Positions 12,097 to 49,805 of a DNA stretch of 64,000 bases are shown one piece after another. A model generated the notes under the pieces. It saw nothing but the letters and a program-made list of their open reading frames with translations, ran no database searches and was not told where the DNA came from. Position numbers and translations under genes: made by a program. Each line of letters starts with the position of its first letter. Position 1 is the first letter of the stretch. This DNA comes from Anthoceros angustus (lineage: Eukaryota; Plantae; Anthocerotophyta), in NCBI GenBank assembly GCA_010909165.1, contig MU008168.1, forward strand, positions 1,302,001-1,366,000, given 5' to 3'.

Positions 12097-12101
12097 TAAT
12101 A

Positions 12102-12438: not shown

Positions 12439-12449
12439 TTCTCCCCATT

Positions 12450-21800: not shown

Positions 21801-24800
21801 CAAAGATTGCCTTGTGCATCCGGGAGGGAGGACAATAGACTATAACCTGCAATCACCAATCCATACATGATTTATTCCACTTTCAGACGCGTGACTCGAG
21901 TAGCGTGCAAGGGTGACTTGTCATGTCGGTCAGTATGGACGGGCACCAAACCATACCCATCCATTCCGCCAAGCGGACAAGTCATCGAGTTTTATTGCGT
22001 GTGACATGGGAAGTACAAGTAGTGATCAAGGATGAAGGACTTTCCCATCCCAATGTTTAATTACGGTAAGCATATGTCCCCACATTGTGAGGTATAAACC
22101 GTCCTGCTCACCACGACGCTGCCGTGCCCGAGGCAGAGCCAAGGGATGGCCCTCCATACCAGTCCTTGATGGGCGAGGGAGAGCAACCTCCCATCCATCA
22201 TCCTCGATGGCCATCGTCATTGTGGAATTGCAGCCCTTGTCCTTAATGGCCGTCGGTTTCCACCACGAGCAACAATAATGTGCACATACGCAATGATCCA
22301 CAAAGCGGACACAATCGGTGAGGCGGCGGTTTTGACTTATGGATTCCACAAACACTTTAGCCTGCGCATGGACTTGTAGGTAGGCGAATAGGGCCAAAAA
22401 GTGTTCACATCCGGGCCTCACACTGAACCCCAGCCATACCGTGTGGTCACGAACACCATGCACCATGTGGAAGGAACCACCTCGCCACCGAGCGGCAAGT
22501 CCCCACGAGGATAGCCACATGACGCTCGCTCCACGCCATGAGGCGGTGACACTCCAACCTTTGCAAAGGATCCTTGATGGCCATCAAGATTTCTAGTTGT
22601 GCACGAAGATGGAGACATGAACACACGCCTCGTGGTGCGAACTACCACTCCACGCCCATTTAGGTTTCAAGCTAGCTCCGGCATACGTCAACATGTCATA
22701 CATGGCATAAGGTAGCAGGAGGCGCCGCAGGCATGTTCCGTGAAAATCGCCCTGCGAGGATGACCAAGAGAAAGGTAGTAGCGTGAAGCGAGGGCAAGGT
22801 GGTGACATTTAAAGCGGACCACCACCTTCTCACCTCTTGTGCCCCAGGCCACATCGGGTTGCGGATGAGAGGATCTTGAATTTCAACTGCCCATGTGACA
22901 AACCAAACATGGCGAGCTTTGATGGTGCCGTCGAATGATGGTTCTGCTGTAAATGTGAAGTGTGCGCCCATAAAGGCCGAATAAGTTTGTTTTCATGTCT
23001 CCTAAGGGCTGGAAATCCTTTGCGGCAGTGCGGCCATAGTGACGTCAGCCGTCACCCTAGCATGGTGCCGGGCGTGAATACATTATACGTTACGCCATGT
23101 GACGCGCATGATTGGTGGAGGCGAGAATGGGAGTCTCGAGCGATGGACATCATTATCTAGGAGAGCGGAATTGGCATATATGGCAAATTCACATACAGAC
23201 GGTCCTTCATTCATGGCATAATGAAAGGGGCATTTAGTTTGCTTGAATGGCTCTCACGTGCCACCCACCGTCCTTGCACAATGGTGTAGATGTTGATATA
23301 GATTATTACAAAAGCGATTGGAGCAGTAGCGTCGTCATTCAAACGACCTTGAGACGTGGCATGTTTTCTTCCATGCCATGAGTTTTCAATTATTCTAATG
23401 GCTTGCACCCACCTTCCTTGGACCATGGTGGAGGGAGAATTTTATTTGAGAGAAAGGGAACCATTGTCCTTGGTTCATGGCGTTGTAAGATGGCCATGAC
23501 CTTGTCATGGCATGGCACTTCCTTGGTCATCGGCCACTCGAAATCGCATTGCAAACACTTGTCCTTGGGTCACGAAATGGTCATAAAAAGCGGGGACTAT
23601 ATATGGCATGCATGGAGGAATGGCATCGTGGACAAGGAAGGTTTCGTGTTTGTGCCTTGCAAACACATGTAGTGAGGAAGGTGGCATGGCAAGGCAAGGA
23701 GCCGGCATGGCATGCCACGTAGTCCCCTTCTTGGATGGAAGCACGAAGGATGGTCCTAGCGGCAAGTGAGGTGGGCACGCTGGAGAATGCGATTCAAGTG
23801 GAGAGGGTGGATGATCATCGCGTGGGCGGGAGGCGGCGAGAGAGGTGTCGGGTCGGAGGGAGCAACTCCAGCGGTGGAGTCTGCGCCAAAGAGGGCGATC
23901 TTTGAGAAAGCGGCCGCAAGGGTGGGTGTCTCTAATAGGTGGGAGCTAACTGGAGGCGCTTTGCAGGAGAGAATCCAAAACTTTCGGAGGAATCGCAGGC
24001 CGTGACATCGGAGGAGGAGGAATTTGGCGTGAGTCAGGAGAAAGGGGCTGGTGATCGGGAGGAGCATGGTGGTGCTGCCCAAGAGGCCGTGTGGGTGAGA
24101 GAGGCCATTGGTCTTGTGGACCTTCTTGGGTGGCGATGGATAACCCCCAACAACGTGGGAGGAGGATGCAGGAGGAAAAGCTGCCCAAGTGGGAGGTCTC
24201 TGGAGGCCAAGGCGCGCAATGATGAGAAGGCAAGCGAGGCGGATGTGGAGATGGCGGATGATGAGGTGGAGAGACATCTACTACTACACTACATTGGAGA
24301 ATTGATGGAGCGGTTGGCGGTAAGCCACTAGGCAGCGTCATTTGCCGTGTTGTCTGCATGGGCGTGGAGTGTACATGGCTGTGAGCGGTTGCGATGGAGG
24401 TTGGGTGGAGAATGAGGAGTTGTTGGTTGGTGCGACGTGGTGATATGTAGGACGTGAGCTCTAAGTGATGTGTGTGCATGACTAGGGAAGAAGGGAAGGG
24501 AAAGGCGGTGGAAGGTGAAGGCCATGTCGGAAGGAAGGCACGAGATACTAGTGGAGAGAAGGAAGATGGAGGAAAGGTGGCAAGCAGGCGTCACCGTCAA
24601 GTGATCTTGGAGGCAACGTAGATGGTGGGGAACGGATGTGGGGAGAGCTGGAGAGATGGTGGGGACACGGATGTGGGAGCGGGAGCACTGGAGATGGTGG
24701 GGAACGGATGGATGAGAGAATGCGGGGCGCATGCCGATCTGAAAAACAACCGTGGCGGTGGGCCGTTTGTGGAGGGGAATGAATGTTGAGCCATTTTCTT

Positions 24801-25883
24801 CGAGCTGAGTCGCCAAGATGCGTGGGTGGACCGGTGATGGTCAATCAACAAGCAGATGGAATTGGTATTCCCACCTTTATAGCCTAGCATTTACAGGGTC
24901 CTTCGCCGTGAAAGTGGTGATTGAGGCCTGGATAGGTCTAGGAAGTTGTGGAGGAACCACAAAAACAATGGTGTTGGTCAAGAGTCACCAAGTGGCGTCA
25001 AGACTATGGCCATATCACTTGGAAGACGTACATGTTTGTAGATAAAGCCAATTGCATCGGTGGCAACAAAGCCACGATCTTTGAAAAGGGATAGAGGGCG
25101 CTTGAACTATCCAAAATTCCAATTAATTTGTCAATAAAATCAAACACTTATATATGCAAGGTATGAGAGTGACGTAAGGGTTAGCACATATATATTACTA
25201 TATACACAAGTCTTGACGCCTATATACGTACATATATACGTATACAAAGAGACATATAAATACACTAATATAATAGAAGTATAACAGATGGATGTGTACA
25301 TATATATGTACACATACTTACACATACTTATGTCTTGAAGCCTACAAACATATATATGTATACTGTGTATATGCAAAGGAGGTAAAAAGGAAGGAAGGAG
25401 AGAGAGGTCCTTGTACAAGCATGTTGCAAGAGGAAGAGGGAAGAGTATAAAATGGGTTGTGATAGGGAGGTCCTTCTCACGGTCATGAAGGAGGAGAAGT
25501 GAAAGAGTATAAAAGGGTGTGATAAGGGCAATAAATAGCAGGGTGAGGTGAGAGGAGAGAGACCAAGTATTTAAGATGGGGTGAAGATGGGGTGAGAAGT
25601 TAGGATGGTGGGAAGAGAAAGAATGGACCAACTTAACGCAAGCCATCAAACCATGTTGCAAGTTGGAAGTGGTACATAAATACACGTAATAAAGTGGGAA
25701 ATTATTAAAATGCTTGTGAGAGGTGTACCCGGAAGGGAGTGGGAAGAGAGAGTGCGAGGTTCGTGTTAAGATACGCACCAAACGGGACAGAACTAACAAA
25801 CTTAATACCAAGCCTCAAAACATGTTGCAATGGAAGTGTAACAAAAATTGCAACATCGACTATAGGGTGCCCTTTCTAGTAGG
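18851..25883. mobile_element. CACTA/EnSpm-type DNA transposon (about 7.0 kb), probably defective
   Basis: Termini C(A)CTACTAGAAAAGGGCACC(C)TATGTTACA inverted at both ends; 3-bp TSD GCT (18848-50 and 25884-86; AGC in the mirror); dense subterminal TGTTGCAA/TGTTACA/TGTAACA repeats at 18868-19110 and 25655-25860. Confidence 0.8.
25150..25420. repeat. TA/CA-rich low-complexity tract
   Basis: TATATAC/ACATAT runs; explains the spurious ORF 25140..25811. Confidence 0.7.
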
Positions 25884-26795: not shown

Positions 26796-29221
26796 AATGC
26801 AACAATGGGTCTAAGCACGATTATGGTGACCACAACCGGAACGCAGAAACCGTCCCGATTGGCATGTTCGAGTTACATGGAATATGTTTTATGCAAAAAT
26901 ATCGTCAAATTGATCTCAATTTTAGTGTACAATACGTTTTGGGAGGAGAATTTTGTTGAATTTTTTTCTCCATAAAAACATGCATAACATATATCATTGC
27001 CATTATTACACAGATTAAGCTGGGACAAATGACAATTTCGTGACTAAGTACCCTTGTCCACTGTGAATCTGGCGTCGCAGCGTCGGACGCGACCACATGT
27101 GTTGATTAGGTCTTTGGTTTTGCAAAGCGAGTGTTTTGGGGGCGGACTCTTCATGTGAACAGACGTTTGTGACGTGGGCGCGTCGTGGAGGCCAGCGCTT
27201 ACTGTGTGTGCACAGAATCGATTGCACGCGTGGCGTGGAAGCTGGAAGTGTGGCGAGCTTAGATTCGTTTGTGGGTGGCGCAGGCGTGGGGCTGGATTTT
27301 GATCGATTGGAGGTGCTTGCTTTTGGAGGTCGTTTCTAACACGGTTTTTGTTTGCTACCTAGGAGGGTGCTAGTGTGGCGCCCGATGAGGCGTTTTGGGT
27401 GCTCAAGTGCTAGTTTGGGTTGGTGGTTGTTTGTGTGTGGGCGGTGTGTGGGCGGAATCCATGGGTGAACCACTTGGCGGTGGAGGGAGGCAGTGTGGCT
27501 TTGCGGGGAGGCGGCGTGCGGCTATGGCGGCTGCGGTGAGGATGGTGGCGAGGGAGCATCACGCCCAAGGGAGTAGGAGGCAGGAGGCAGGCTGCCACCC
27601 TTGGAGAGAGTGACCGCAGCCTTGCAAGTCGACATCTCTTGACGAGGCGAGCCGTGGAATTGGCACTCGGGGATGCGGTTCTATCCATTGGTGTGAATGT
27701 GCGGGATGAGAACAGCAATTGGGCTTAAGGCGTGTGGGTGGGTCGGATGTTTTGGCTAGGTACTTTGGAGGCCTTCACGGAGCAAATGATGGCTACCTTC
27801 TAGGGACTACTAATTTCTTTATCGTGGAAGAATGGAGGAACATCGATGACTTGGTGTACAGTTATGCAGGCGCCGGCCTAGCTTGCGCCGGAGGGTTCCT
27901 CGAAACCTTCGTTGGTGTGTTGGTGGAGCGCTCGGTAAAGGGTGGGCAAGCTTATTGGGACAAGCTTGGATGAAGAAGAAACAACGGAAGTGTAAAGATG
28001 GTAGTAGCGATCTGAGGGACGAGGAAGGTGGAGGTGAGGAAGATGAGGGCTCGGATGCTGATGATGCTCCACCAAGTGAAGCTTGGTGCGGGGCTGGCGT
28101 TCCATGTCGGAGGAAACTCCACATTGAGGCCACGGAGGCCACAGTCGTCAACAAAGTTTGGAGCTGCTCTCAAAGGAAAAGGCAGTATGATTGACAAGGA
28201 GCCATTGTCCTCGTCGAAAGTTGTGGCGAGCTTACGGAGAAGGACCACGTCGTCCATTGAAAGGTAAGACATATGGCCGTGAGAAAAGTGGCCTCGACCA
28301 TGGGCTCCAATGGAGGTGATTTGGCTCTTGGCTTCGTGTGAAGAAGGACTTGAGGCGTCGCGGATGAGGAGTCAAAGCTTGCTAAGGCGGGGAGGATGCC
28401 TTGAAGGATCTGGACTTGACAGGTCCAAATGACCTTGTGCTCAATGGCGGTGGGTTGGACTCGAAACACAACGATGCACCATGGGCGGTCCGCCAAAGTG
28501 TGAAGGCCAAGACAGACCATTGTAATGTTGTGAACAAGAAGTTGGCGAAAACACGGCTTGTAGGAGCAAGGCAAGAACATGTTCTTTGGGTTTTGGATTT
28601 TGAACAGGCGATCCGGTGAATTCACCAGCTAAGAGTGAAGAAGTCACGCCGGCACAGGCGGTGGCTCCATGCCACTCCCACGAGCCACACCACCGTGATA
28701 ACGATGTCAGTATGCACGTGCGTTTTCATAGTCCGACATCACAGTCATTACGCAATTCTCAATGGTCTTTGTCTCGAGGGGAGTTTTGATTTTGTGTCCT
28801 TGATCTCATGTGCACATGTTTGTTATTCTACGGAATATGCGGAGGATGTTTCGAAGGTCGGGTTCTTTAATGAGTGTGCAATGATTGCCTACAAAGCAGT
28901 CGTGTTTGTTGTTCTCCGATAAGTCCTGCTTCTAAGGGTGGTAGTGAAATGGTAGGGGAACCGAGCACTTTTACTCTCTATGATCTGAGTTGATGCTGCA
29001 TGCAGATGCTGGCTTTTTGGCGTGGAAGTCCATGTGTTTGATTGTGGTGTGTGGAAGATGCATGCGCTCTGTGCGGAGATGGTGCACTAGTTTGCCATTC
29101 TATTTCTTGTCCGAAGTTCTTGCATGTGTGGTAGACACGTGGTATGCGTGAGGCGAGTTGCTTGTGTCGAGCCGTGATGGAATGGATTTGTTGTGGTGGC
29201 GGGGTTGGTGGTCGATTGGAC

Positions 29222-29700
29222 ATCATGGAGATGTGGTGGCATGTGGAGATGTGGTGGCGTCGAGCATCATAGAGATGTGGTGGCGTCGAGCATCATAGAG
29301 ATGTGGTGGCGGGTTGGTCTTTGAAGTTTGTGACATGGTGGCACTTGATGTGGTGGCGGGGATGGTGGCGCCGAGTATGTGCCATGGTGGCGCTTGCTTG
29401 ATGTGGTGGCGGGGTTGGTGGTCACCTGCCCGAGTATGTGCCATGGTGGCCGCTTGCTTGATGTGGTGGCGGGGTTGGTGGTGAACTGCCCGAGTATGTG
29501 CCATGGTGGCCGCTTACTTCATGTGGTGGCGGGGTTGGTGGTGAACTGCCCGAGTATGTGCCATGGTGGCCGCTTACTTGATGTGGTGGGGTTGGTGGTG
29601 ATCTGGCCGAGTATGTGCCATGGTGGCCGCTTACTTGATGTGATGGCGGGTTTGGTGGTGATCTGCCCGAGTATGTGACATGGTGGCCGCGTACCTGATG
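29222..29700. repeat. Tandem arrays inside the Sola-like element: 25-bp unit x2-3, then about 60-bp unit x about 6 (GTATGTGCCATGGTGGCCGCTTACTTGATGTGGTGGCGGGGTTGGTGGTGAACTGCCCGA)
   Basis: Direct inspection; mirror at about 46950-47400. Confidence 0.9.
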
Positions 29701-32700
29701 TGCTGGCCACAGTTGGTGGTCTTCAATCCTCTTTGGTGATGTGTTGGCAAGGATTGTAATGTAGTTATAGCTTGTGATGTTCTCGTATCTGATTTTGTGA
29801 TTTGTTGGTGAAGGCGCTCTCGACTTTAACGTGGGTCTTCTGCGGGTGGTATGCATGCGAGATGGTATTCGCGCCACAGGCATTGCTTCCATGACATATG
29901 TCTCTTCCAAGCGTTGCAAAGGCATGTTCACCGCGCATAGGGTGCAACGAGATTTCAAAACACAGTTCTTGGCCAAGGGTGGCCCTTGAAGGACACCAAC
30001 GCACTGCATCGTGGGAGGATGACCAGCAGTGGGAAGCCAGTATTTGGAGATTATTCGCGATCCGCACGCATCATAGATGGGCGGTGTGATAAGCTCAAAC
30101 AATCGCTAGCAACACCTCGAGCAAGAAGTACTTAGAATCACCGGGTTTTGGCGCACTTGCATTGCTATCTACCGCAACGGTGAGCGAATTTCACAGCCAT
30201 ATTGTATCATTCTTCTCATTTTTGAATGGTCTTTGCTTGTGCCGGGAACATGAGCAGTCCCCATGTCCACAAACTTCTCCATGCATCTGTGGTAGCCTCT
30301 TTAAAACACCGCCTGACAATAGGGCTCCACCAGAAAAGCTAATACGGAGGTGCGTCCATCTTGGGACATGCACGAATATGTACACGCAACAAGCCCGCTT
30401 GACGCCATAATCCGGGCCAATTGTCGTGTCCACGTAGCCAATCCAATCCTCCAAAGATGGACTCGAGGTGGTGGCCCTTGCATCAAGGCTCCGCGTTTTG
30501 GGAAGCAGGAGGGCTTGAAGGGAACATGGACGGTGTGGCCCTTAGTCCCTACAATGGCTTCTTCGGTGCCCCTACAGTCACCTAGCACTCTGGAAATTCT
30601 TGTGCAGTCTTGAAGGATGTGGATGCCATTGTTGGTCGGACTTTGCTCCACGAAGATGGCGTTCGGAAGAGTTTTTGGCGATAATTTTGTAGGGTCTAGT
30701 GATGTCTGTGTCGATGGTGCTGTCACATTGGTGACGGTGGTTCGCACCCATGAAGAAACGCGATGGAGGTCGGGAGGTGATGAGATTGAATTGGCGGGGA
30801 TGGTCAGCATCTGTTGTTGTCATTCGGTGCCCAAGAGGTTATAAAGCGGTGATGTTCACCTGCTAGTGGTTTGAAGCTTTGTGTAGCTCATCCTTTGGTG
30901 ACCATGTGGCTATGCTTGATGGTGATGGTGTGGACAAGAGTGAAAAGGTTGGTGATGGTCGGTTGTGATCTCCTTTGCCGCATGGAGAACACGGCTCTTC
31001 TCAAAGCTGCCGAGGGGCCAATCTGTGGAGGCGATCAAGTGGACAATGACAGCATGCATGAAGCTCCGCGGCGATGATGAAGATGCCACCACATGCTCAA
31101 GAGGTGGATGAGTTGCGAGGTTTAGTTCTGCTCTTGTAGAGAAGATGAGCACAAATGCAGTGCAGGAAGTTCGCACCCTTCACGTGGTAGTGGCGGCGTG
31201 GAAACAATCGTGGTCGGGCTGGCCCATTGAAGGCGGAGGAGGGGCGTGGAGGGAGGAACACTCGTGCGGGCATGCAACTGATGAAGAGCCTCAACGACCT
31301 GAAGGTATGGGCTATGGTTCGATGGCCGTGACTACGGTACAAATTTCATGGTGTTGGCTCAAGGGAAATCCACGAGGAAGTGGACTTTATCTCTTGAAAT
31401 GTATGGAACACATCGAACTTGTGACCTTCAAGGATACTAATTGGGGAGGGAGGAGTTTAGCAGCACTATTGTTGTGAAAGCCTTCTACTATGAGCAAGTT
31501 CCCGGCATTGGTATGTACACTTTCTTTGGACTGGCGTGCCACCCAATGATCCTGAGGAGGACTGGTGCTGGCGACTAAGTTTTTGATGTGGCCAATGAGA
31601 AGCAAAATGAAAGCAACAATCGGCTCCACCCACATGAGAGGAAGTACATAGAGTGGTTGGCAAAGGTCGAACATGCAGGCGAAAAGTTGAAGACCGTGTG
31701 ACGATTGAATGTGTTTGTTTGTGGATCATGTGAGGGGTCTCTGAATTTGTCCTGCTGGTTGTGAGTGTTCGAGGCCATGTGACCGACATTTTTGGACAAA
31801 TGCGGTGTGAGTCGGGGATAAACACTTTGAGTCTGGATCCCATGTTGTATCAATGGGTATACGCCTTGTGACGAAATGCTCCATTTTGTGAGGGCACACC
31901 GAGCTAACCCCTATACTTGAATGGTTCAATGTATCTGACGACTTAGAATGAGAAGTGCCCTTCAAATTGCGTTCGCGCATGACAATTGGGTCCAACACGA
32001 TGCCAACCTAGCATCCTCCACCCACAAATGGCACAACCGATGGCATGAAGGTGAAAAAGCGGAAGGGCTCAAGCACAATCGCCCATCACCACACCGGTGG
32101 TGAACAACACAAAGCGCTAACCAAGGGAAGTATCGCTAGCCTATGAACAAAGGAACATGTAAGGCCCGGCTGAAGTTCCTTCCTCATGCTAGGATGGATT
32201 AGGCATCCACTTCCACCATCGTCATCCTCGCCCTCTTGCACCATATTATTGTCCACACCTCGGATCTGCAGATTCGGCTCCCGCCGCGTTCTTCCCGACC
32301 ATACGGCGTGGCGGCGGCGTCTCGGCCCATCACGCTTCCGCCTTTGTTGCCGGCGGTGGCTCGCGGTACTCCACCCAGCTTAACGCCGCCATGGCATCGA
32401 TCCTCTTGCTTCCACGGCCCGAGGTGCATGCACTGCGCGTGTGCCTCTTCGGCGCGGTAGCAACGACGTCGGAAGGCACTCGGACCCGACCCCATGTTGT
32501 TGCTGGTGCGGACTTAGCGAAGATGATCGGCGGGTGAAGGCGAGAGGAATGAATTGGTGTCATATTACCTGTTTTGTACACAACCAAGCTGTTGCACCCG
32601 GGCGGTCAAGTGGCCACCGTCATATGGCTCGGCTCTTATTCCCCAGGCGAAAGGAGGCGGTCACGCAGCATCACGTGTCCACGATGCGAGGAACTTGGAG

Positions 32701-32853
32701 GAATTAAGAATCATTATTGAATGCACCGGAAGTGTACCCAGGCGAGATGTATTAGAATGACGCAATTGTGATTCTGACTCATGAGTACAATTGTTTTTGG
32801 CATTTGCCTATGTTTCCATCGGATGCCCGCTTAATTCATTTTACGCTAGGTAG

Positions 32854-35800
32854 TCACATGGAGTCGTCACCCTCTAAAGCAAAGTACACACCCCCTGCAC
32901 CTCGTCTTATGGTCATCTCAAATTTGCACATCACGCATTCAGAGGATGCAATCGCATGGTCGAATAAAAGGCATACAAGCGCTCGCATCTTGAATAGTGT
33001 AATACATTCCAGACAATGACCTCTCGGCATGAACGTCTTCATACTCCAAGGACACGATCTTGGGTGCGGAAAGTATGCTTTGCCTCCGTGCATCCGAGGA
33101 CATAAAATGTTGTCCCTCATCCGTGGTCTGCAAAAGCGAGGAAGTTGTCTCCTACTTCGGAAGGTCACCATGTCGGAGATATCTTCACTCTCATTGTCCA
33201 GATAACATCGGGACCATTGGTCCCTACGTCCGAGGCTAGAGGAGCACCATTAGGCATGTTCGGGAGGCCGCTTGCCGCGAGTTATTATTCACAGGATTTG
33301 GCCATGTGGCCTCAAAGTGAAGGCTTTCCAATACACAGATGAGGCACCGTTTCGCATTCGAATGCGCACTTCCGGGCACTCCACGCAAAAACAAGCAAGG
33401 CTCGCATTTTCGCTTAGTCGGATCTCAAGCTAAACCCATAGATCTGTGCATTTTTTGGACCAGTGTAGTCGCAACCAAACTTATTCCTCCTGTTTACTTG
33501 ATTTCTCTATGAGCCGAAGCTCCGATGCATATGGTGTCCACTTGTGTAAGAAGAAGAGGCCCCACGAAATATGACTTGTAAGGTAGGCCACGACATCCGC
33601 CGTGATTGAAGCGTGCCGTTGGGGATGATTCTGCTGCCAACTCTTTTGAATAGCTCCTGCGTCATGTTCACCCTTCCCATGGCCACTACGAAATCGACCA
33701 CAACATCCGACACCGCCCGGTGAGGGGTATCTTGCAATGAAATATGCCTTGAAGGGCTTGCACATCAAATAACACCAATGTTCTCGTGGCGCGGAAACCA
33801 GTCGCCATCCATTGCCAATGCTTCATAACGCAATGTTGGTAACAACGATCGTGAACCAAGTCATCAACGATGTAAAATGATAATACTTCTCAACGTTGCA
33901 GCCTGGGTCTTGGGGTCAATGGGCCCATTTCGCGGTAAAGACCGGCACCAAAATGGATACTTGATCATTACGCGATTATAGGCGTATTTAGATTACGAAC
34001 ACCAAAAGCATAGTTTTGGTGAAGTCCATAAGCGAGACAACGACATCCGATGGGAACCACTCTAAGCATTGCCTAAATTCCAAAGCACATCGCGCACATA
34101 ATAATCGTGGAGGATGAACTCCCTCATCTTTTTAGAAGTATGACACAAACTCCATTGGATGAGTCTCCATGAAAACTAGCTTTATGCGCTTCTTGTCCCC
34201 CTCACTATCTCTACCAACCACTTGATATTGAAGCGTCGCCACTTCAAAATGGAGTCGGGTGCACCTCCTTTGATGTCTCACCGGGCGAATCGCACCTTCC
34301 TCACGCCACAACGGGGCACGAAGACATGCAAGCTTGTGCCATGCGCATCACACTCTTTCTCGCAAGGCTTTGACAAGCAACCTTAAGCAACACAGTCTTG
34401 TGCATTGCAATGAAGAGGAGACTCTTCTACCGAGTGAGGAACACAAATGTCACGGCAATGGCATTGTCCGAGGATGCACTCTTGAAAGCCCACCACGCAA
34501 AGCATTAAAAGCGTCCTTGAGGAAGGCCATTTCTACATGGTACCGGCGTGAGCGTTGCGTTCTTGCAAGCTTTTGGAAATACGGTTTGATTTTCAAAATC
34601 TGGCGCCTGAATCTCTGGGTGCTCGCGCAAAACCAAGTAGAACTCGTCGCAACACCGGGATAGGCCATAGATTGAGACACGCCATCACACAAATTACTAG
34701 CTCGGCTTTGAGCAACACACGGCGTGTGCAAGCGAGAATGTGCCACCATGTGCACACACATTTCCACACTCATAGCATACAAGCGTCTCCGTGGACACCA
34801 AGCCACTACCATAACACCACAAACCACGCCATAACACGGACCACCTCGATGTCCTCATGACCGGGGCGACACTATCACGGTGGCTACATTGCTCACCGCG
34901 TCACTACATCACCACAACACGCCACCGCGAGGCCCACCACCACCTCCGAGCCACCGCCACCACCTCCAGACCTGCCACCACCTCCGGATCACTTGCCACC
35001 ACCTCGGGAGCCCCCACCCACTCCCAGGAGCTCTCCCACCACCCATCGTTACACCTCGCCCGGGCTCCACCACCACATCCGGAGCCCGGCCACCACATCG
35101 AATCTTGCGACCACATCCGGGCCCGACCACCACATCCGAGCCCGAACACATCCGGGAGGTTGACCACAACATGTGGAGCCCTCCAACCATATCCGGAGCT
35201 CGACCACCGACCGTGGCCGACCACCACCCGGAGCCCGACCACGCATCCACCGTCCACCGCCACCCGCAAACAACATCACCACAGCTCTAGCGGCTACCAC
35301 ATGCCCACATCCCAAAGCCCAACACGACTGGCCGGCGTACCACGGTTCTCCACCACCATTGCACCACGGATTCCCTAATATCGCCTCCAACCTATAGCAT
35401 CACCTCATGGAGGCAAAAAACCCACTGTCGGACCATCTCCAACAACCTCGTAGCACAATGGACTAAAAGGAAGGAAAAGCGCGGTTGAAGTGCCACTGGC
35501 ACTTGCACAAAGAAGGAACCCACATCCCAAGCAGCGTGGAAAAAATCACAACACACACGATGCAAATTAAATCGCCATTGTAGGTCCATACCCGAAGCCT
35601 TAAGCTTGAAGAAGGTGCACCCTCCCTCCCAACCACTCGCGCCTTCAGCAGAGCACGAACCAATCCAAGAACATCCGAGCACGCACCACACAAATGGCGG
35701 TTGAATGCAATATGGAGGATGCCTAAGCGCTTCTAAGCGGCGGACATTTGACATAAGAACCAGCATGGCATGAACAGGACCGCTCCCATCGACGTGCTCC

Positions 35801-36810
35801 TACAAAGACCACTTGCACCATGCCCTTTCGAACCAAACAAGGTTCTTAGAAGGCCACTAGGAAGAACATGAACCACCACATGTCGGGCCCATCAAACTAA
35901 ATTGAAGACCACAGTGCATCACACGAGAGGTGTCGAGGAAGTGGATTATATGCTTGACATATGAGTTGGGACCGATCGCATCCGCTTTGTGTCCTTGGTG
36001 TTTGAAGAAGGGATGCCACCTCCCAAAATTGCACTATGGTGGCCTTCACGATTCTGAGACAACGTCGCACCTTGTTCTCCTTCCACTCCCACACAAAGTG
36101 TTTGCTGCGACGCTCTGCCTCTCCACGACCATCCAACGCCTAATCGCTTTTGGTGACACCAATGTGCTTTGCGGTGTTGGAACCAAGTTAAACCGGTCAA
36201 TGTCGTTCGACAATATGAGGTTCCACAATGTATTCCGTGCTGCAAGTGATCGCCCACTTGTACATCTCTTAGATTCCAAGCCGTCCTCGGGTTACGCATT
36301 ACAGACAAACAAGCGTGCATCTTTGGCGTCGAGGGGAGGAGTCCAAAATCCAAGGAGAGGAGCACGATGAAACCACTCCAAAATCTCGCGTCGACATGGA
36401 CACGAAAACTTGTCTGTCATCTTCAAAACTCTTACGCCAATGCCTTGGCCACTTGCTTCCTTCCTTCGTCTGCACTCCTCACTTCCCAAGGTAGTTGCTG
36501 ACCCGTTGCATTACCGCACACACGTACTCTCGTGGAAGTTGAAGGAGGTGTTGGCACTTCCTCATTCCCTCTTCTCCAACAACTGGAGGTGGTTCTTGTG
36601 CCTCATCCTCATCCCTTGACTTGCCTCTCACGCGCCTCGTTTGTTGGCTGCCCAATATCGGCGCTCGCCGGTGACCGCATCTTGCTCCTTGCTACTTTGA
36701 AGTCCTTGTATACACCTTCCTCTCCGCTAGCACATTTCTTGTCCATGCACCTCCAACATTCAGCAGTCCGGGGAAAACTGCGCCCAACACGCAACAACCC
36801 CATCACCTAA
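32854..36810 (-). pseudogene. Sola-type DDD transposase, frameshifted, interrupted by about 1.1 kb (about 34720-35870)
   Basis: Combining both arms gives, in order: FWEVAS..SSNTKDTKRMRIGPNSYVKH; IKPYF...YHVEM; CARCGVRKVRFCP..E; KWRRFQY; SLMDFTKNY; HFY.SDD..HD; WSDGAAS; SGHGKGEHD(G)AGA..KR; LACFCVEC; VGDNFLAF...EGDDSM*. Confidence 0.8.
34880..35300. repeat. CCACCAC-rich degenerate repeat tract
   Basis: Recurrent CCACCACCTCCG/CCACCACATCCG motifs; lies within the transposase interruption. Confidence 0.7.
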
Positions 36811-36923
36811 CCTAATTGACGTCAACCTCCGTTGACTTTCGCGGTGATAACATGCCGCTACACAGTGGCGCTTGACAACTTAGCCACTACCACGTTTTTG
36901 ACCACCAAAGCGTGCATACACCC

Positions 36924-37295
36924 CAATCCTCGGCTCGTTGGGTTGAAATTTGATAGTCTAGGAATCATCTTTCATTCTTGTTTCTCGTGTACATATAGGT
37001 CCTGGCCTCGTTCATGCGAAGAACTCTTGGAGGTAACCGAATCGGGTTACTGTTTCGACCGTTCTACCTACGATTCCAATTTACGGGCATTTACCCATAT
37101 TTAACCGGCTATTTCCTAATTACTGGATAACGACCGGGGTTAGTCTGGGTTTGACCGTTTCTACCTGTTAGTAAGTCTGTTATTATACGGTCCGTTGCGT
37201 GCTACTGTTTGCGTCCCGTTAGGTTGCTAGCACCTGCGCCATAGCGAGACGAAGTTTGTGTGGGTACCCTATCTGACGAGTGAGCTGCTGTGACA
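36924..37295 (-). repeat. Gypsy 5' LTR (main part; last 5 bp displaced to 26798-26802 by the Sola-like insertion)
   Basis: Aligns with 12102-12438; flanked by TSD TAATA at 37296-37300. Confidence 0.85.
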
Positions 37296-39329: not shown

Positions 39330-39685
39330 TGTCACGACTCACTCGTCGGATAGGGTACCCACACAAACTTCGTCCTCGCTATGGCGCGGTGCTAGCAACC
39401 TAACGGACGCAAACAAAGAGTAACGCAACGGACCGTATAATAATGACTTACTAACGGTAGAACGGTCAAACCGCACTAACCCCATTATCCAAGAATTAGG
39501 AAATAGCCGGTTAAATATGGGTAAATGCGTGAATTGGAATCGAGGTAGAACGGTCGAAACAAAGAAGCGATTCTACTCCAAGAGTTCTTCGCATGAACGA
39601 GGCCGGGACCTATATGTACACGGAAACAAGAATGAAGATGTTCATTCCAGACTATCATTTCACCGCACGAGCTTCCCGAGGATTG
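39330..39685 (+). repeat. Mirror copy of Gypsy 5' LTR (TGTCACGAC...), preceded by TSD TATTA
   Basis: Reverse complement of 36924-37295. Confidence 0.85.
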
Positions 39686-42600
39686 GGGTGTATACTGGTG
39701 GTCAAAAACGTGGTAGTGGCTAAGTTGTCAAGCGGCCACCAGTGGCATGTTATCATCCGGAAAGTCCCGAGGTTGACGTTTGAATTAGGTTTAGGTGATG
39801 GGGTTTGTTGGTTGCAGTGTTGGGCGCAAGTTTTTCCATACGGATCACGGGTGGAGATGCATGTGATGTGCTAGCGGAGAGGAAGGTGTATACAAGGACT
39901 TCAAAGTAGCAAGGAGCAAGATCACCGGCCACGGCGCCGATATTGGGCAGCCAACAAACGAGGGCGGCGTGAGAGGCAAGTCAGAAGGGATGAGGCACAA
40001 GAACCACCTCCAGTTGTTGGAGAAGAGGGAATGAGGAAGTGCCAACACCTCCTTCAACTTCCACACGAGAGAGTACGTGTGTGGCGGTAATGCAACGGTC
40101 AGAGTAACTACCTTGGGAAGTGAGGAGTGCAGATAAGGAAGCGAAGTGGCCAAGGCATTGGCGTAAGAGTTTTGAAGATGATGACAAGTTTTCGTGTCCA
40201 TGTCGACGCGAGATTTTGGAGTGGTTTCATCGTGCTCTCCTTCGTGATTTTCGGACTCCTCCTCCTCGACGCCAAAGATGCAGCTTGTTTGTCACAATGC
40301 GTAACCCGAGGACGGCTTATGGAATCTAAGAGATGTACAAGTGGGCGATCACTTGCAGCACGAATACATTGTGGAACCTCATTGTCGACATTGACCGGTT
40401 TAACTTGGTTCCAACACCGCAAAGCACATTGGTGTCACCAAAGCGATTAGTGCTGGATGGTCGTGGAGAGGCAGTGCTCAGCAAACACTGTGTGTGGGAG
40501 TGGAAGGAGAACAAGGTGACGTTGTCTCCAGAATCGTGAAGGCCACCATAGTGCAATTTTGGGAGGTGGCATCTCGCCTTCTTCAAACACCAAGGACACA
40601 AAGCGGATGCGCATCGGTCCCAACTCATATGTCAAGCATATAATCCACTTCCTCGACACCTCTCGTGATGCACTCGTGGTCTTCAATTTAGTTTGACGGG
40701 CCCCATATGGTGGTTCATGTTCTTCCTAGTGCCTTCTAAGAACCTTGTTTGGTTCGAAAGGGCATGCCGGTGCAAGTGGTCTTTGTAGGAGCACGTCCGA
40801 TGGGAGCTGTTCATGCCATGCTAGTTCTTATGTCAAATGTCCGCTTAGAAGCGCTTAGGCATCCTCCATATTGCATTCAACCGCCATTTGTGTGGTGCGT
40901 CTCGGATGTTCTTGCGATTGGTTCGTGCTGCTCGCAAGGCGCGAGTGGTTACACCGGAGGGAGGGTGCACCTTCTTCAAGCTTAAGGCTTCGGTATGGAC
41001 CTACAATGGCGATTTAATTTGCATCGTGTGTGTTGTGATTTTTTCCACGTTGCTTGGGATGTGGGTTCCTTCTTTGTGCAAGTCTGCAGTTGAAGTGCCC
41101 GTGGCACTTCAACCGGCTTTTCCTTCCTTTTAGTCCATTGTGCTACGAGGTTGTTGGAGATGGTCCGACCAGTGGGTTTTGCCTCCATGAGGTGATGCTA
41201 TAGGTTGGAGGCGATATTAGGGAATCCGCATGGTAATGGTGGAGAACCTGGTACGCTTGGCCAGTGTGGTGTTTGGGATGTGGGCATGTGGTAGCCGTGC
41301 TAGAGTCGTGGTGATGTTGTTTGCGGGTGGCGGCGCGGTGGACGAGCCGTGGATGCGTGGTGGCCGATTGTGGTGGTCGCCACGAATGTGGTCGAGCCCT
41401 GGATATTGGAGGGCTCCGGATGTTGTGGTCAACCTCCCACGTGTTCGGCTCTGATGTGGTGGTCGGGCCCGGATGCCGTGGTCGCGATTCGATGTGGTGG
41501 CCGGGCCCGGATGTGGTGGTGGAGCTCCGAGGTGTAACGCATTGAGTGGTGGGAGAGCCTGAGGTGGCAGGGCTTGAGGTGGTGGCAAGGATCCCGAGGT
41601 GGTGGTGGCAGGAGGTGGTGGCAGGGCTCCGGGAGGTGGTGGCGGGCCGCTTTGTGGCCGATGTTGTGGTGATGTAGTGACGCTGGTGAGCAATGTAGCC
41701 ACCGTGATAGTGTCGTCCCCTGGTCATGAGGACATCGAGGTGGTCTGGTGTTCTGGCGTGGTATGTGGTGTTATGGTAGGTAGGTGGCTTGGTGTCCACG
41801 GAGACGCTTGTATGCTATGAGTGTGGAAATGTGTGCACTGCTGGTGGCACATTCTCGCGCACACGTGGTTATTGCTCAAAGCCGCTAGTAATTTGTGTGA
41901 TGGCGTGTCTCAATCCTGATGGCCTATCCTCGGTGTTGCAGACGGAGTTCTACTTGCGGTTTTGCGCGAGCACCCAGAGATTCAAGTAGGGCCAGATTTT
42001 GAAAATCAAACCGTATTACAAAGCTTGCAAGAACGCAACGCTCACGGTACCATGTAGAAATGGCCTTCCTCAAGGACGCTTTTAATGCTTTGCGTGGTGG
42101 GCTTTCAAGAGTGCATCCTCGTGGACAATGCCATTGCACTGTGACATTGTGTTCCTCACTCAGAGAAGAGTCTCCTCTTCATTGCAATGCACCAAGACTG
42201 TTGTCTGTAAGGTTGCTTCAAACAAATTTTGTGCGAGAAAGAGTGTGATGGCACAAGCTTGCATGTCTTGAGTGTGCCCGTTGTGGCGTGAGGAAGGTGC
42301 GATTCTGTCCTGGTGAGACATCAAAGGAGGTGCACCCCGACTCCATTTTGAAGTGGCGACGCTTTCAATATCAAGTGGTTGGTAGAGATAGTGAGGGGCA
42401 GGACAAGAAGCGCATAAAGCTAGTTTTCATGGAGACTCATCCAGCGGAGTTTGTGTCATACTTCTCCAAAAAGATGAGGGAGTTCATCCTCCACGATTAT
42501 GTGCGGCTTTGGAATTTAGGCAATGCTTAGAGTGGTTCCCATCGGATGTCGTTGTCTCGATTATGGACTTGATCAAAACTATGCTTTTGGTGTTCGTAAT

Positions 42601-45600
42601 CTAAATACGCTAATCGCGAATGATCAAGTATCCATTTTGGTGCTGGTCTTTTACGTGAAATGGGCCCATTGACCCCAAGACCCGCAACGTTGAGAAGTAT
42701 TATCATTTTACATCGATGACTTGGTTCACGATCGTTGTTCTCCAACATTGCGTTATGAAGCATTGGCAATGGATGGCGACTGGTTTTCAGCCACGAGAAC
42801 ATTGGTGTTGGTCGGATGGGGCTGCAAGCCGCCAAGGCATGTCGGCCTTCATATTTCATTGCAAGATACCCCATCTCACCGGCGGGTGTCGGATGTTGTG
42901 GTCGATTTCGAGTGGCCATGGGAAGGGTGAACATGACGCAGGAGCTATTACGAAAAGAGCGTATGCGCAGAATCATCCCCAACGGCACCTGTGCTTCAAT
43001 CAGCGGATGTCGTGGCCTACCTTACAAGTCATATTTCGTGGGGCCTCTTCTTCTTACACAAGTGGACACCATGCATCGAGCCTGCTCATAGAGAAATCAA
43101 GAGGAATAAGTTTGGCGACCTATACTGGTCCAAAAAATGCACAAGATCTATGGGTTTAGCTTGACAGATCCGACTAAGTCGAAAATGCGAGCCTTGCTTG
43201 TTTTGCGTGGAGTGCTGGAAGTGATTCGAATGCGAAACGGTGCCTCATCTGAGGTATTGGAAAGCCTTCACTTTGAGGCCACATGGCCAAATCCTGAAAT
43301 AACTCGTGCCGGGCAAGGTGCCTCCGAACATGCCTAATGGTGCTCCTCTAGCCTCGGATGTGCGGAGGGACCAATGGTCCCGATGTTATCTGGACAATGA
43401 GAGTGAAGATATCTCGACATGGCGACCTCGAAGTAGGAGACAACTTCCTCGCAGACCACGGATGAGGACAACATTTTATGTCCTCGATGCACGGAGGCAA
43501 AGCATACTCTTCGCACCCAAGATCGTGTCCTTGGAGTATGAAGACGTTTCAGGGAGAGGTCGTCGTTGGAATGTATTACACTATTCAAGATGCAGGCGCT
43601 TGTATGCCTTTTATTCGGACCATTTTGCATCCTCGCATGGAATGCGTGCGATGTGCAAATTTGAGATGACCATAAGAGGTGAGGGGGGTGTGTACTTTGC
43701 TTAGAGGGTGACGACTCCATCGGGTGACTACTGTAGCGTAAAATGAATTAAGCGGGCATCCGATGGAAACATAGGCAAATGCCAAAAACAATTGTACTCA
43801 TGAGTCAGAATCACAATTGCTTCATTCAATACATCTCGCCAAGCACTTCCGGTGCATTCAATAATGATTCTTAATTCCTCCAAGTTCCTGATCGTGGACA
43901 CGTGATGCTGGCATGGCCGCCTCCTTTTCGCCAGGGGAATAAGAGCCGAGCCATATGACTGTGGCCACTTGACCCCCGGGTGCAATGGTTGTGTACAAAA
44001 CAAAGGTAATATGACACCAATTCATTCCCACTCTCGCCTTCACCCGCGCCGATCATCTTCTCGCTAAGTCCGCATCAGAGCAACATGGGGTCGTGCTCGC
44101 CGAGTGCCTTCCGACTGGTTGCTACCGCCGTCAAGAGGCACGCGCAGTGCCGGCACCTCGGGCCGTGGAAGCAAGAGGATCGATGCAAGCCATGGCGGCG
44201 GCTTTTGCAGTGGAGTACCGCAGCGCCACCGCCGGCAACAAAGGCGAAGTGATGGGCCGAGACGCCGCCGCCACGCCGTATGGTCGGGAAGAACGGCGGG
44301 AGCCGAATCTGCAGATCCGAGGTGGACAATAATATGGTGCAAGAGGGCGAGGATGACGATGGTGGAAGCGTTGTGGATGCCTAATCCATCCTAGCACAGT
44401 AGGAAGGAACTTCGCAGCCGGCCTTACATGTTCCGTTGTTCATAGGCTAGCGCATACTTCCCTTGGTTAGCAGTTTGTGTTGTTCACCACCCGGTGTGGT
44501 GATGGGCAGATTGTGCTTGAGCCCTTCCAGTTTTTTCACTCTTCACTGTACCATCAGTTTGTGCCATTTGTGGGTGGAGGATGCTAGGTTGGCATGCTGT
44601 GTTGGACCCAATTGTCATGCGCGAACGCAATTTGAAGGGCACCTGCTCATTCTAAGTCCGATACATTGAACCATTCAAGACATAGGGGGTTAGCACTTGT
44701 GCCCTCACAAAATGGAGCATTTCGTCACAAGGCGATACCCATTGATACAACATGGGATCCAGACTCAAAGTGTTTATCCCCGACTCACACCGCATTTGTC
44801 CAAAAAATGTCCGGTCACATGGCCTCGAACACTCACAACCAGCCGACAAATTCACAGACCCTCACATGATCCACACAACAAACACATTCAATCACACACG
44901 GTCAACTTTTCGCCGCATGACCTTTGCCAACCACTCTATGTACTTCCTCTCATGTGGTGGAGCCAGACTGTTCTTTCATTTTGCTTCTCCATTGGCCACA
45001 TCAAAAACTTAGTCGCCAAAGACCAGTCCTCCTCAGATCACAGGCCACAGAGTCCAAAGTGTACATACCAATGTCGGGAACTTGCTCATAGTAGAAGGCT
45101 TTCACAACAATAGTGCTCGCTCAAACTCCTCCCTCCCCAATTAGTATCCTTGAAGGTCGGCCAAGTTCTGACAGTTCCATACATTTCAAGAGATAAAGTC
45201 CACTTCTCGGATTTCCCTTCGGAGCCAACACCATGAAATTTGTACCTGTAGTCACGGTCATCGAACCATAGCCCATACCTTCAGGTCGTTGAGGCTCTTC
45301 ATCAGGCTGGTTACGTCTGGCACGAGTGTTCCTCCCTCCACGCCCAGCCCCTCTCCGCTTCAATGGGCCAGCCCGACCACGATTGTTTCCTCCACGGCGG
45401 CCACTACCACGTGAAGGGTGCGAACTTCCCACTGCATTTGTGCTCTCATCCTGCTCTACAAGAGCAAGAACTAAACCCGCAACCCGTCATCCACCTCTTG
45501 AGCATGCGGTGGCATCTTCATCCTTGTCGCCGCGGAGCTTCGTGCATGCTCGTGTCATTGTCCACTTGATCGCCTCGCATTGGCCCCTCAGCCTTTGAGA

Positions 45601-48600
45601 AGAGATGTCTCCATGCGCGTGGAGATCACAACCGACCATCACCAACCTTTTCACTCTTGTCCACACCATCACCATCAAGCATAGCCACATGGTCACCAAA
45701 GGATGTAGCTACAATTAATGTGCTTCAAACCACTAGCAGTGAACATCACCGCAGCTATAACCTCTTGGGCACTGTGAATGACAACAAGATGCTGACCATC
45801 GCCCCGCCAATTCAATCTCATCACCCTCCAGCTCCATCGCGTTTTCATCGGTGCCGAACCACCGGTCACCAATGTGACAGCACCATCGACCAGCATATCA
45901 CTAGACCCTACAAAATTATCGCCAAAACTCTTCCGAACCATCTTCGTGGAGCAAAGTCTGACCAACAATGGCATCCACATCCTTCAGCACTCCCTCGCTA
46001 ACAGCAATTTCCACAGAGTGCTAGGTGCAGCCTGTAGGGGCACCTGAACAAAAGCCACTGTAGGGACTAAGGGCCACACCCCGTCCATGTTCCCTTCAAG
46101 CCCGCCCGTTCCCAAAACGCAGCCTTGAGCCTGTACAGCAAGGGCCACCACCTCTGAGTCCATCTTTGGAGGATTGGATTGGCTACCTACCGGTGGACAC
46201 GATAATTGGCCCGGATTGCGTCGCAAGTGGGCTTGTTCAGCGTGGTACATATTCGTGCATGTCCCATGGACGCACCTCAGATTAGCTTTTCTGGTGGAGC
46301 CCTAGGCGGCCGGTGTCAAGTGTTTTAAAGAGGCTACTACAAAGATGCAGAAGTTTGTGGACATGGGGGACAACTCATGTTCCCCGCACAAGCAAAGACC
46401 ATTCAAAAATGAGAAGAATGATACAAATATGGCTGTGAAATTCTCAATTGGCGATAGCAATGTGCAAGTGCGCCAAACCGTGATTCTAAGTACTTCTTGC
46501 TCTGAGGTGTTGCTAGCCAGTTGTTTGAGCTTATCGGAGCGCCACCTTCTGCCCATCTATGATGCAGTGTTGCGGGATCGCGAATAATCTCCAAATACTC
46601 TGCTTCCCACTGTGCTCGCTGGTCATCCTCCCACGATGTGCTGTCCTCAACACCTTGGCCAGAACGTTTTTGAAATCTCGTGTTGCACCAGGCGGGCAGA
46701 ACATGCCTTTGCAACGCTTGGAAGAGACATATGTCATGGAAGCAATGCCCATGTGGCGCCAATACCATCTCGCTTGCATGCATACCACCCGCAGAAGACC
46801 CACGTTAAAGTCAAGAGCTGCCTTCACCAACAAATCACAATCAGACACGATCGAACATCACAAGCTATCGCAACTACATTACAATCCTTGCCAACACATC
46901 ACCAAAGAGGATTGAAGACCACCAACTGCGGGCTGGCACATCGTGCACGCCCACCATGTCACATACTCGGCAGATCACCACCAAACCCGCCATCACATGG
47001 GCCACCATGGCACATACTGGCCAGATCACCACCAACCCCGCCACCACATCAAGCAAGCGGCCACCATGGCACATACTGGCGTTCACCACCAACCCCGCCA
47101 CCACAAGTAAGCGGCCACCATGGCACATACTCTGACCACCAACCCCGCCACCACCACATCAAGCGCCACCATGGCACATACTGGGCGGTGACCACCAACC
47201 CCGCCACCACATCAACAAGCGGCCACCATGGCACATACTCGCTTGACCACCATCCCCGCCACCACATCAAGCCACCATGTCACAAACTCGGTCATAAGCA
47301 CCAACCCCGCCACCACATCTCTATGATGCTCGACGCCACCACATCTCTATGATGCTCGACGCCACCACATCTCCACATGCCACCACATCTCCATGATGTC
47401 CAATCGACCACCAACCCCGCCACCACAACAAATCCGCTCATTCCATCACGGCTCGACAAGCAACTCGCCTCACAATGCGTGCATACCACCAGTCTACCAC
47501 ATGCAGAAACGCCGACAAGAAATAGAATGGCAAACTAGTGCACCATCTCCGCATGCAGCGCATGCATCTTCACACACCACAATCAAACACATGGACTTCC
47601 ACGCCAAAAGCCAGCATCGCAGATCAACTCGGATCATAGAGAGTAAAAGCAAGTGTCGGTTCCTACCAGCCTTCACTACCACCCTTAGAAACAGAACTTG
47701 CTGGAGAACAACAAACACGCCGACTGCTTTGTAGGCAGCAATCATTGCACACTCATTGCGGCAACCCGACCTTCGAAACATCCTCCGCATATTCCAAAGA
47801 ATAACAAACATGTGCACATGAGATCAAGGACACAAAATCAAAAACTCCCCGAGACAAAGACCATTGAGAATTGCGAATGACTGTGATCTTTGGACTATGA
47901 AAACGTACTGGTGCGACAAGATGTCTTATTGCCGGTGTGGTGTGGGAGTGGCATGGAGCCACCGCCTGTGCCGTGGACTTCTTCACTCTTAGGTGAATTC
48001 ATGGATCGCCTGTTCAAAATCCAAAAACCCAAAGAACATGTTCTTGCAACTTGCTCCTACAAGCCGTTTTCGCCAACTTTGTTCACAACATTACAATGGT
48101 CCGTCTTGGCCTTCACACTTTGGCGGACCGCCCATGGTGCATCGTTGTGTTTCGAGTCCAACCCACCGCCATTGAGCACAAGGTCTATGCGTGGACCTTC
48201 GTAAGTCCAGATCCTTCAAGGCATCCTCCCCGCCTTAGCAAGCTTTGACTCCTCATCCGCAAGACGCCTCAAGTCCTTCTTCACACGAAGCAGAAAAATC
48301 ACCTCCATTGGAGCCCATGGTCGAGGCCACTTTTCTCACATATGTCTTACCTTTCAATGGACGTGGTCCTTCTCCGTCAAGCTCGCCACAACTTTCGACG
48401 AGGACAATGGCTCCTTGTCAATCACAAATGCTTTTCCTTTGTTGGCGAGAGCTCCAAACTTTGTTGGGACGACGCAGTGGCCTCCGTGGGCTCCTGTGGG
48501 AGTTTCCCTCACATGGAACGCCAGCCCGCACCAAGCTTCAGCTGGTGGAGCATCATCTGCATCCGAGCCCTCATCTTCCTCACCTCCACCTTCCTCGTCC

Positions 48601-49805
48601 CAAGATCGCCACTACCATCTTTACACTTCCGTTGTTTCTTCTTCATCAAGCTTGTCCCAATAAGCTTGCCAGCTCACCCTTTTACCGAGCGCTTCCACCA
48701 ACACACCAACAAAGAAGGTTTCGAGGAACCTCGTGGCAACAAGCAAGCTAGCCGGCCTGCATAACTGTACACCAAGTCATCGATGTTCCTCCATTCTTCC
48801 ACAGACGAAATTAGTAGTCCCTAGAAGGTAGCCATCATTTGCTCCGTGAAGGCCTCCAAAGTACCTAGCCAAAACATCCGACCCACCCACACGCCTTAAG
48901 CCCAATTGCATGTGTTCTCATCCCGCAGACATTCCAAATGGATAGAACCGCATCCCCGAGTGCCAATTCCACGCCAAGCTCGCCTGCCAAGAGATGTCGA
49001 CTTGCAAGGCTGCGGTCACCTCTCGCCGGGGCGGGTGGCAGCCCTCTGTGCCTCCTTACGCCTTACTCTCCCTTGGGCGTGATGCTCTCCCGCCACCATC
49101 CTCACTGCAGATGCCGCCATAGCCGCACCGCCTCCCCGCAGCCACACTGCCTCCTCCACCGCCAAGTGGTTCACCCATGGATTCCCCACACACCGCCCAC
49201 ACACAAATGTACCACCAACCCAAACTAGCACTTGAGCACCCAAAACGCCTCACCGGCGCCACACTAGCACCCTCCTAGGTAGCAAACAAAACCGTGTTAG
49301 AAACGACCTCCAAAAGCAAGCGACCTCCAATCGATCGAAATCCGGCTCCGCCCGCCACCCAGCGAATCTAAGCCCGCCACACTTCCGGCTTCCACGCCCG
49401 CGCGCAATCGGTCTGTGCACACCACGATGGCCCAGCCTCCACGCACGTCACAAACGTCATTCACATGAAGAGTCCGCCCCAAAACACTCGCTTTGCAAAA
49501 CCAAAGACCTAATCAACACATGTGGTCGCGTCCGCCTTGCGACAGCGCATTCAAGTGGACAAGGGGTACTTAGTCACTGAAATTGTCATTTGTCCCACCG
49601 TTAATTCAGGTAATAATGGCAATGATATATGTTATGCATGTTTTATGGAAAAAATTCAACAAAATTCTCCTCCCAAAAAGCGTATACACTAAAATTGAGA
49701 TCAATTTGGCGATATTTTTGCATAAAACATATTCCACGTAACTTCGAACATGCCAGCGGGGACGGTTTTGCGTTTCCAGTTGTGGTCACCATCGTGCTTA
49801 GACCC
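39686..49805 (+). mobile_element. Mirror copy of the Sola-like transposon (transposase core about 41900-43720)
   Basis: ATTG|GGGTGTAT...TTAGACCC|ATTG TTGCA TT TGGTATCGAGC; ORFs 42288..42530 and 42716..43159 carry transposase motifs. Confidence 0.8.

Follow-up and report, generated by a model that had tools for sequence, protein, structure and literature searches.

The 64-kb window analysed here, a 64,000-nucleotide stretch of contig MU008168.1 from the hornwort Anthoceros angustus in which all positions count from the first letter, contains a delimited segment of ~10.1 kb at 26807-36923. The segment carries matching inverted ends, a short direct duplication at either side, the broken remnant of a transposase gene on the minus strand and a long interior, and the entire segment recurs in mirrored form further along the window (Table 1). 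Based on an unscored comparison with published transposases, it very probably represents a single old insertion of a Sola2 DNA transposon of the autonomous type.

Ends of the element and the empty site

The element starts with GGGTCTAAGCACG at position 26807 and ends with CGTGCATACACCC at position 36923, and its termini therefore read GGG...CCC. When its first 30 bases are aligned with the last 30 in reverse complement, they form an inverted repeat of ~30 bp, in which 23 of the 31 aligned positions are identical and two 1-base gaps are present. This score was matched by 13 of 20000 random pairs of 30-mers drawn from the window. The tetranucleotide CAAT adjoins the element on both sides. Joining the left flank to the right flank minus one CAAT yields ATGCAACAATCCTCGGCTC, and this exact 19-base string is present in a paralogue of the site at 12097-12428. 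The junction in the paralogue (ATGCAACAAT/CCTCGGCTC) matches at 19/19 bases and holds a single CAAT. Beyond the junction, the paralogue tracks the right flank of the element with 82% identity for ~320 bp. The homology to the left of the CAAT site stops after ~10 bases, which indicates that the paralogue is truncated or starts there. The chance of the six matching bases beyond CAAT is ~1 in 4000. The boundaries of the element and its 4-bp duplication are established, with the empty-site paralogue as the strongest support. A first-pass annotation had proposed GGG termini, imperfect terminal inverted repeats of about 30 bp and a 4-bp target-site duplication, all of which are borne out.

Table 1. 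Positions of the element, its mirror copy and associated features in the window (a point marks an unassigned strand).
Feature	Positions	Strand	Remarks
Empty site, paralogous	12097-12428	+	Flanks of the element joined via one CAAT
Palindrome, left arm	14130-38259	.	Right arm 38384-64000, extending past the window end; spacer ~124 bp
Target-site duplication CAAT, outer side of copy 1	26803-26806	.	
Terminal inverted repeat, outer	26807-26836	+	Opens GGGTCTAAGCACGATTATGGTGACC
Interior, ~6 kb	26837-33303	.	No recognisable coding content
Tandem array	29343-29707	.	60-bp unit, 6.2 copies; 26-bp repeat before it at 29246-29311
Main transposase exon remnant	33304-34605	-	Family profile positions 21-480; stops and frameshifts
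CFCxxC cysteine cluster	33376-33393	-	Counterpart of SCFCxxC in intact relatives
GHGKGEHD block	33661-33684	-	Third catalytic Asp at 33661-33663
First catalytic Asp codon (MDF block)	34024-34026	-	ENY/QNY block next, in a different frame
Low-complexity G+C-rich repeats	34900-35290	.	Between the two coding parts
Upstream exon or open reading frame remnant, helix-turn-helix-like	35860-36726	-	~280 amino acids in intact relatives; profile match
Terminal inverted repeat, inner	36894-36923	-	Reverse complement opens GGGTGTATGCACGCTTTGGTGGTC
Target-site duplication CAAT, inner side of copy 1	36924-36927	.	
Mirror copy of the entire element	39686-49805	+	87% identical; ATTG at 39682-39685 and 49806-49809
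Mirror-copy transposase remnant	42042-42973	+	Profile positions 42-362; WSDG 42809-42820, HGKG 42917-42928

The transposase remnant

Neither copy of the element retains a long open reading frame (ORF) for the transposase. The longest open piece comprises 166 amino acids, is located in the mirror copy (42659-43156) and holds both the WSDG and the GHGKGEHD blocks. Compared with P0046, copy 1 contains seven in-frame stops, and copy 2 shifts frame. At the first catalytic aspartate (Asp), MDFTKTM and QNYAFGVRN are read in different frames, and this frameshift is common to both copies. The motifs named in the first-pass annotation have fared unequally. GHGKGEHD and CFCxxC are present in copy 1. The WSDG block is not intact in 26807-36923 and survives in the mirror copy alone, where the CxxCG cluster of the family is also exclusively retained (42273-42287). 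DFxxNY does not occur literally and appears only after frameshift correction, its MDF and QNY halves lying in separate frames. The long C-terminal extension is unsupported: in intact relatives, the main exon continues for ~615-650 residues before the protein ends, and no part of the transposase beyond profile position 480 was detectable in the window.

A second coding part precedes the main exon. Among the 80 related metagenome loci, 16 have an ORF of ~280 amino acids that precedes the main transposase ORF by 0.7-1 kb and has the same orientation (L003 540-1385, L012 525-1346 and 14 further loci). A profile of 14 of these metagenome ORFs matches both copies of the element in a colinear manner, at 36726-35860 (-) and 39875-40693 (+), with a best E of 8e-7. 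The conserved end of the upstream ORF reads RKKRSDA..E...L...FW..ETRVSPNKKD, and one upstream ORF shows a helix-turn-helix (HTH) match in Pfam. The transposase fragment of Sola2-1_Ec32 from Ectocarpus, which is a single ORF, holds the matching string RTKRSDATPPEMLELMGTFWHTDEVSRASGNSKD directly before its cysteine-rich region, suggesting that the upstream ORF is the probable first exon of the transposase. Together with the catalytic second exon of ~620 amino acids, it probably encodes a transposase of ~900 amino acids. Gene predictions in protein collections hold the second, catalytic part only. This structure, with an HTH-like upstream exon and a ~620-residue catalytic exon, could aid the building of a family model.

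Relatives, catalytic residues and predicted fold

An HMMER search with the 166-residue open piece against 1.84 billion proteins returned 38 matches (best E = 1e-13), all of which carry the blocks DFAENY, FYISDDKxHDxxFVQHC, WSDGCAxQFK and GHGKGEHDGxGA. A word-based protein search with the same piece gave no match, an outcome in line with the length filter of that search. A profile built from the HMMER matches retrieved 231 relatives, many with a length of ~570-680 amino acids. The named relatives are from Klebsormidium nitens (GAQ92554.1) and Cryptomeria japonica (XP_057867281), and the rest come from metagenomes, among them those of peat and moss. Three aspartates, D202, D287 and D329 in P0046 numbering, are invariant across the 38 aligned relatives. 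In an AlphaFold model (mean predicted local distance difference test score, pLDDT, 85; predicted template modelling score, pTM, 0.84), the first of these residues lies in strand 1, the second where strand 4 ends and the third where the helix following strand 5 begins. As modelled, this is how the residues of RNase H-like transposase cores are arranged. Foldseek matched RNase H-fold enzymes exclusively, with weak scores (best E = 3e-4): NurA; IstA, Tn5 and ISCth4 transposases; retroviral integrases; RNase H; and PIWI. A profile search of the sequences of solved structures found no relative, and a scan of viral contigs for relatives gave no match. At the nucleotide level, no match was obtained between the element and the 80 related metagenome loci, nor with Rfam over the whole window.

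Among the metagenome loci, L025 (6010-16074) and L026 (5751-16540) hold a decayed paralogous pair of a related element with ~10 kb in common, and no clean inverted repeat or duplication was found at the ends of these copies. In L012, an inverted pair with GAG ends occurs at 36 and 9547, without a matching 4-bp duplication. L026 also contains an additional insertion of ~0.9 kb at 11952-12866, a repeat that is recurrent in many moss-associated metagenome contigs.

Probable assignment to Sola2

Sola2 elements are described as terminating in 5'-GRG...CYC-3', to which the GGG...CCC ends of the element conform. The catalytic blocks of the relatives follow the same order as those of published Sola2 transposases (Table 2), and the three catalytic aspartates are separated by 85 and 42 residues in the relatives vs 87 and 43 residues in Sola2_DFa-2. 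The blocks of Sola2-1_Ec32 in short form are VDFIEKF, TDGCAKQYKGK and HFKGSHDGIGAVAK, and this transposase shares the N-terminal string RKRSDA..FW..E.SR..N.KD with the relatives. Its own class was assigned by the best BLASTP match to Sola2-1_HM of Repbase (PMC12477816). The Sola1-type blocks of Sola1-1_Ec32 (MDGANQ, VDNTxxENKN and GHTHxxID) were found neither in the remnant nor in the relatives. All of the features tested, comprising the blocks, their spacing, the ends, the inverted repeat and the 4-bp duplication, agree with Sola2, and the element very probably belongs to this superfamily. The Sola2-like identity proposed in the first-pass annotation is supported in the same terms: blocks, order and spacing are as in published Sola2 transposases and unlike those of a published Sola1 transposase, and the ends, repeat and duplication are as in Sola2-1_Ec32.

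Table 2. Catalytic blocks of the relatives and of published Sola transposases. Blocks 1, 3 and 4 are those of the first, second and third catalytic Asp; block 2 is the middle block.
Source	Block 1	Block 2	Block 3	Block 4
Relatives of the remnant	DFAENY	FYISDDKxHDxxFVQHC	WSDGCAxQFK	GHGKGEHDGAGA
Sola2_DFa-2 (Dictyostelium fasciculatum)	LMDFKEN	FSDVLNHC	FWSDGAKHFKS	YHGKSDVD
Sola2_PPa-1 (Polysphondylium pallidum)	CDFKEN		WCDNARHFKS	YHGKSECD
Sola2-1_Ec32 (Ectocarpus)	VDFIEKF	FASEDPRHDFDFHLH	FTDGCAKQYKGK	SHFKGSHDGIGAVAK
Sola1-1_Ec32 (Ectocarpus)	MDGANQ		VDNTVAENKNNY	GHTHIQIDQ

The palindrome and the age of the insertion

Comparison of the window with itself showed that 14130-38259 mirrors 64000-38384 with ~86-87% identity, forming a palindrome whose arms each span 24 kb or more. 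The element occurs in two copies because it sits within this large inverted duplication. Both flanks of the mirror copy at 39686-49805 are the same as those of copy 1, and the CAAT duplication there reads ATTG. The mirror copy was accordingly rejected as an independent insertion. The common flanks further imply that the element was already in place when the inverted duplication arose. The element is old and long dead: its gene is broken, and it was inserted before the inverted duplication, the arms of which now differ by ~13%. It had initially been taken for a young element, a view that does not withstand the stops and frameshifts throughout the gene and the divergence of the surrounding arms.

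Within the right arm, a 1.2-kb segment is duplicated in tandem (51780-53013 and 53009-54219), whereas the left arm has one copy of it (23795-24995).

A history that fits these observations can be proposed. From the properties of its relatives, the transposase would combine an HTH-like N-terminal part and cysteine clusters with a compact RNase H-like core bearing three catalytic aspartates. Such an enzyme would bind the inverted repeats that end in GGG and excise the element, and insertion would proceed via 4-bp staggered cuts, a stagger that would give rise to the CAAT duplication. The ~6-kb interior may already have belonged to the element at insertion. Following insertion, the whole neighbourhood would have been copied in inverted orientation, which would account both for the arms, each 24 kb or longer, and for the second copy at 39686-49805, and both copies would then have decayed further.

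The interior

The interior yields little to protein-level comparison. A Pfam search with 210 open pieces (at least 55-60 amino acids) from both copies returned nothing relevant, and no similarity was found between the interior and ORFs of at least 120 amino acids from related loci. A translated search of the 6-kb interior against the related loci produced low-complexity matches only. No Pfam match to ParB-like or N4C/N6A methyltransferase domains was obtained in the 210 open pieces or in 120 ORFs of related loci. It is very unlikely that the 6 kb is an original part of a bryophyte Sola2 lineage that once encoded an accessory gene without known relatives. If the interior were native and coding, intact copies in Anthoceros or related genomes would expose a new Sola2 cargo.

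In some intact Sola2 loci from peat metagenomes, a conserved ORF of 350-570 amino acids is located on the opposite strand downstream of the transposase, with 35-64% identity between loci (L012 7029-8732, L019 3686-5302 and L003 6857-7903, all on the minus strand) and no convincing Pfam match. This ORF might be a cargo of Sola2 elements. A profile of this candidate accessory ORF detected no remnant in the window.

Alternative readings

Several points weigh against the reading of 26807-36923 as a single old Sola2 insertion. The comparison of blocks was made by eye from the supplements of papers and is unscored, covering three Sola2 transposases and one Sola1 transposase; the top relatives are only 37-42% identical to the remnant; and Pfam gave no match for the pieces of the transposase remnant (10, then 8) or for the intact relatives, including the first 10 of them. 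The remnants of the transposase and of its upstream exon account for ~2.2 of the 10.1 kb, and the copies of the element were counted within the 64-kb window only. A separate lineage with three catalytic aspartates that resembles Sola2, such as Sola3 or an unnamed group near DUF7869 of Pfam, would make the Sola2 label wrong. Such a lineage would be consistent with the lack of a Pfam match, with a comparison made by eye against Sola2 and Sola1 references only, and with the neighbours in a protein atlas, among which are DUF7869 clusters as well as unnamed clusters from animals. However, the three published Sola2 transposases share the three catalytic blocks, the spacing and the N-terminal block with this family, one of these three references was classed by BLASTP to Sola2-1_HM of Repbase, and the Sola1 transposase is clearly different in its blocks. 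A separate lineage is consequently considered highly improbable.

With regard to the extent of the Sola2 element, the original insertion may have been shorter, perhaps 4-5 kb, with 26837-33303 representing a later nested insertion of unrelated repeats. The 6 kb resembles nothing in the related loci or in Pfam, the Sola2-1 element of Ectocarpus has a length of 4.6 kb, and giant DNA transposons often contain fixed nested insertions (PMC12477816). Conversely, no internal long repeat pair, long terminal repeat or second inverted-repeat pair was found in the element, the interior does not recur in the window outside the mirror copy except for the tandem array, the L025/L026 pair has ~10 kb in common, and dictyostelid Sola2 elements reach 10-15 kb. 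A nested origin of the interior is possible, if rather unlikely. The palindrome itself could be an assembly artefact derived from an unpolished fold-back long read, in which case many of the stops and frameshifts would be sequencing errors and the real element could be single, near-intact and young. Within the element, the arms differ by 684 mismatches and 340 indel events per 10 kb, evenly spread and with a transition fraction of 0.55; this proportion of indels, the even spread, the low transition fraction, the spacer of ~124 bp and the many lesions private to one arm are all features that an artefact would explain. However, one molecule read twice could not produce the 1.2-kb tandem duplication that is confined to the right arm. 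F-box gene pieces of 331-398 codons remain open elsewhere in the window, at least one frameshift (from DF to QNY) is common to both arms, and indels are just as frequent in the non-palindromic paralogue at 12097. An artefact appears quite improbable on these grounds; it is retained as a rival because the age estimate would change with it, whereas the classification would not. An old Sola2 insertion, duplicated together with its neighbourhood, is the preferred reading of the locus.

Relation to described Sola elements

The closest resemblances of this Sola2 insertion are to elements from other eukaryotic groups. In Sola2-1_Ec32, from a curated library (Genome Biol 2025, PMC12477816), the ends read GGCGG-CCGCC, the imperfect inverted repeat measures 26 bp and the duplication 4 bp, compared with GGG...CCC, ~30 bp and CAAT here, and its transposase shows the same N-terminal block, cysteine clusters (including C..G.C..CG) and three catalytic blocks. 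The Ectocarpus element differs in its length (4.6 kb vs 10.1 kb), in its brown-algal host and in an apparently low sequence identity. The dictyostelid elements Sola2_DFa-2 and Sola2_PPa-1 (Bao and Jurka 2013, PMC3627910) have 4-bp duplications, 12-22-bp imperfect inverted repeats and lengths of 10-15 kb, and their DFKEN, WSDGAKHFKS and HGKSDVD blocks are similarly spaced to those of the present family. In contrast to the element described here, which has a CAAT target and no recognisable second gene, they carry a Fanzor1 gene and prefer AT-rich AWWT targets. The length of 10.1 kb, which had been regarded as unusual, falls within the dictyostelid range. Sola1-1_Ec32 (PMC12477816), a giant element with a ParB-methyltransferase cargo, is similar as a large DNA transposon with a 4-bp duplication, but its transposase blocks are MDGANQ, VDNTxxENKN and GHTHxxID, and the present element has no ParB or methyltransferase domain. 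The Sola2-type transposase found here is distinct from the Sola1-type transposase of this Ectocarpus element, and the two should therefore not be pooled as 'Sola-like'.

No description of a Sola2 element in hornworts was found in the literature searched, and the element is new for this group in that sense. Plants were reportedly already among the hosts listed in the paper that defined Sola. Sola elements are reported in fern genome papers, with 2739 copies in Ceratopteris and an abundance in Azolla, and a 2026 preprint on Cupressus describes Sola2 as the most abundant DNA-transposon superfamily, which fits the relative from Cryptomeria. The first-pass proposal of an under-described plant lineage consequently does not hold in a strong sense, given that Sola is annotated in ferns and Sola2 is abundant in cypress; nor is the locus a candidate for a new system, being a decayed member of the known Sola2 superfamily and an ordinary find. 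It adds a well-delimited Sola2 insertion, verified by an empty site, to the hornwort genome and is of little significance by itself. The plant or streptophyte branch of Sola2 lacks a Pfam model and is therefore missed by automatic annotation.

Other features of the window

Fragments of the reverse transcriptase of a retroelement are located at 14418-14941 (-) and 63323-63713 (+) and are mirrored between the arms of the palindrome. Pieces of F-box and beta-propeller genes with long open frames are present at 1-993 (-), 4299-5330 (+) and 7159-8782 (-). A smaller inverted duplication relates 3690-6001 to 6920-9409 with 71-85% identity.

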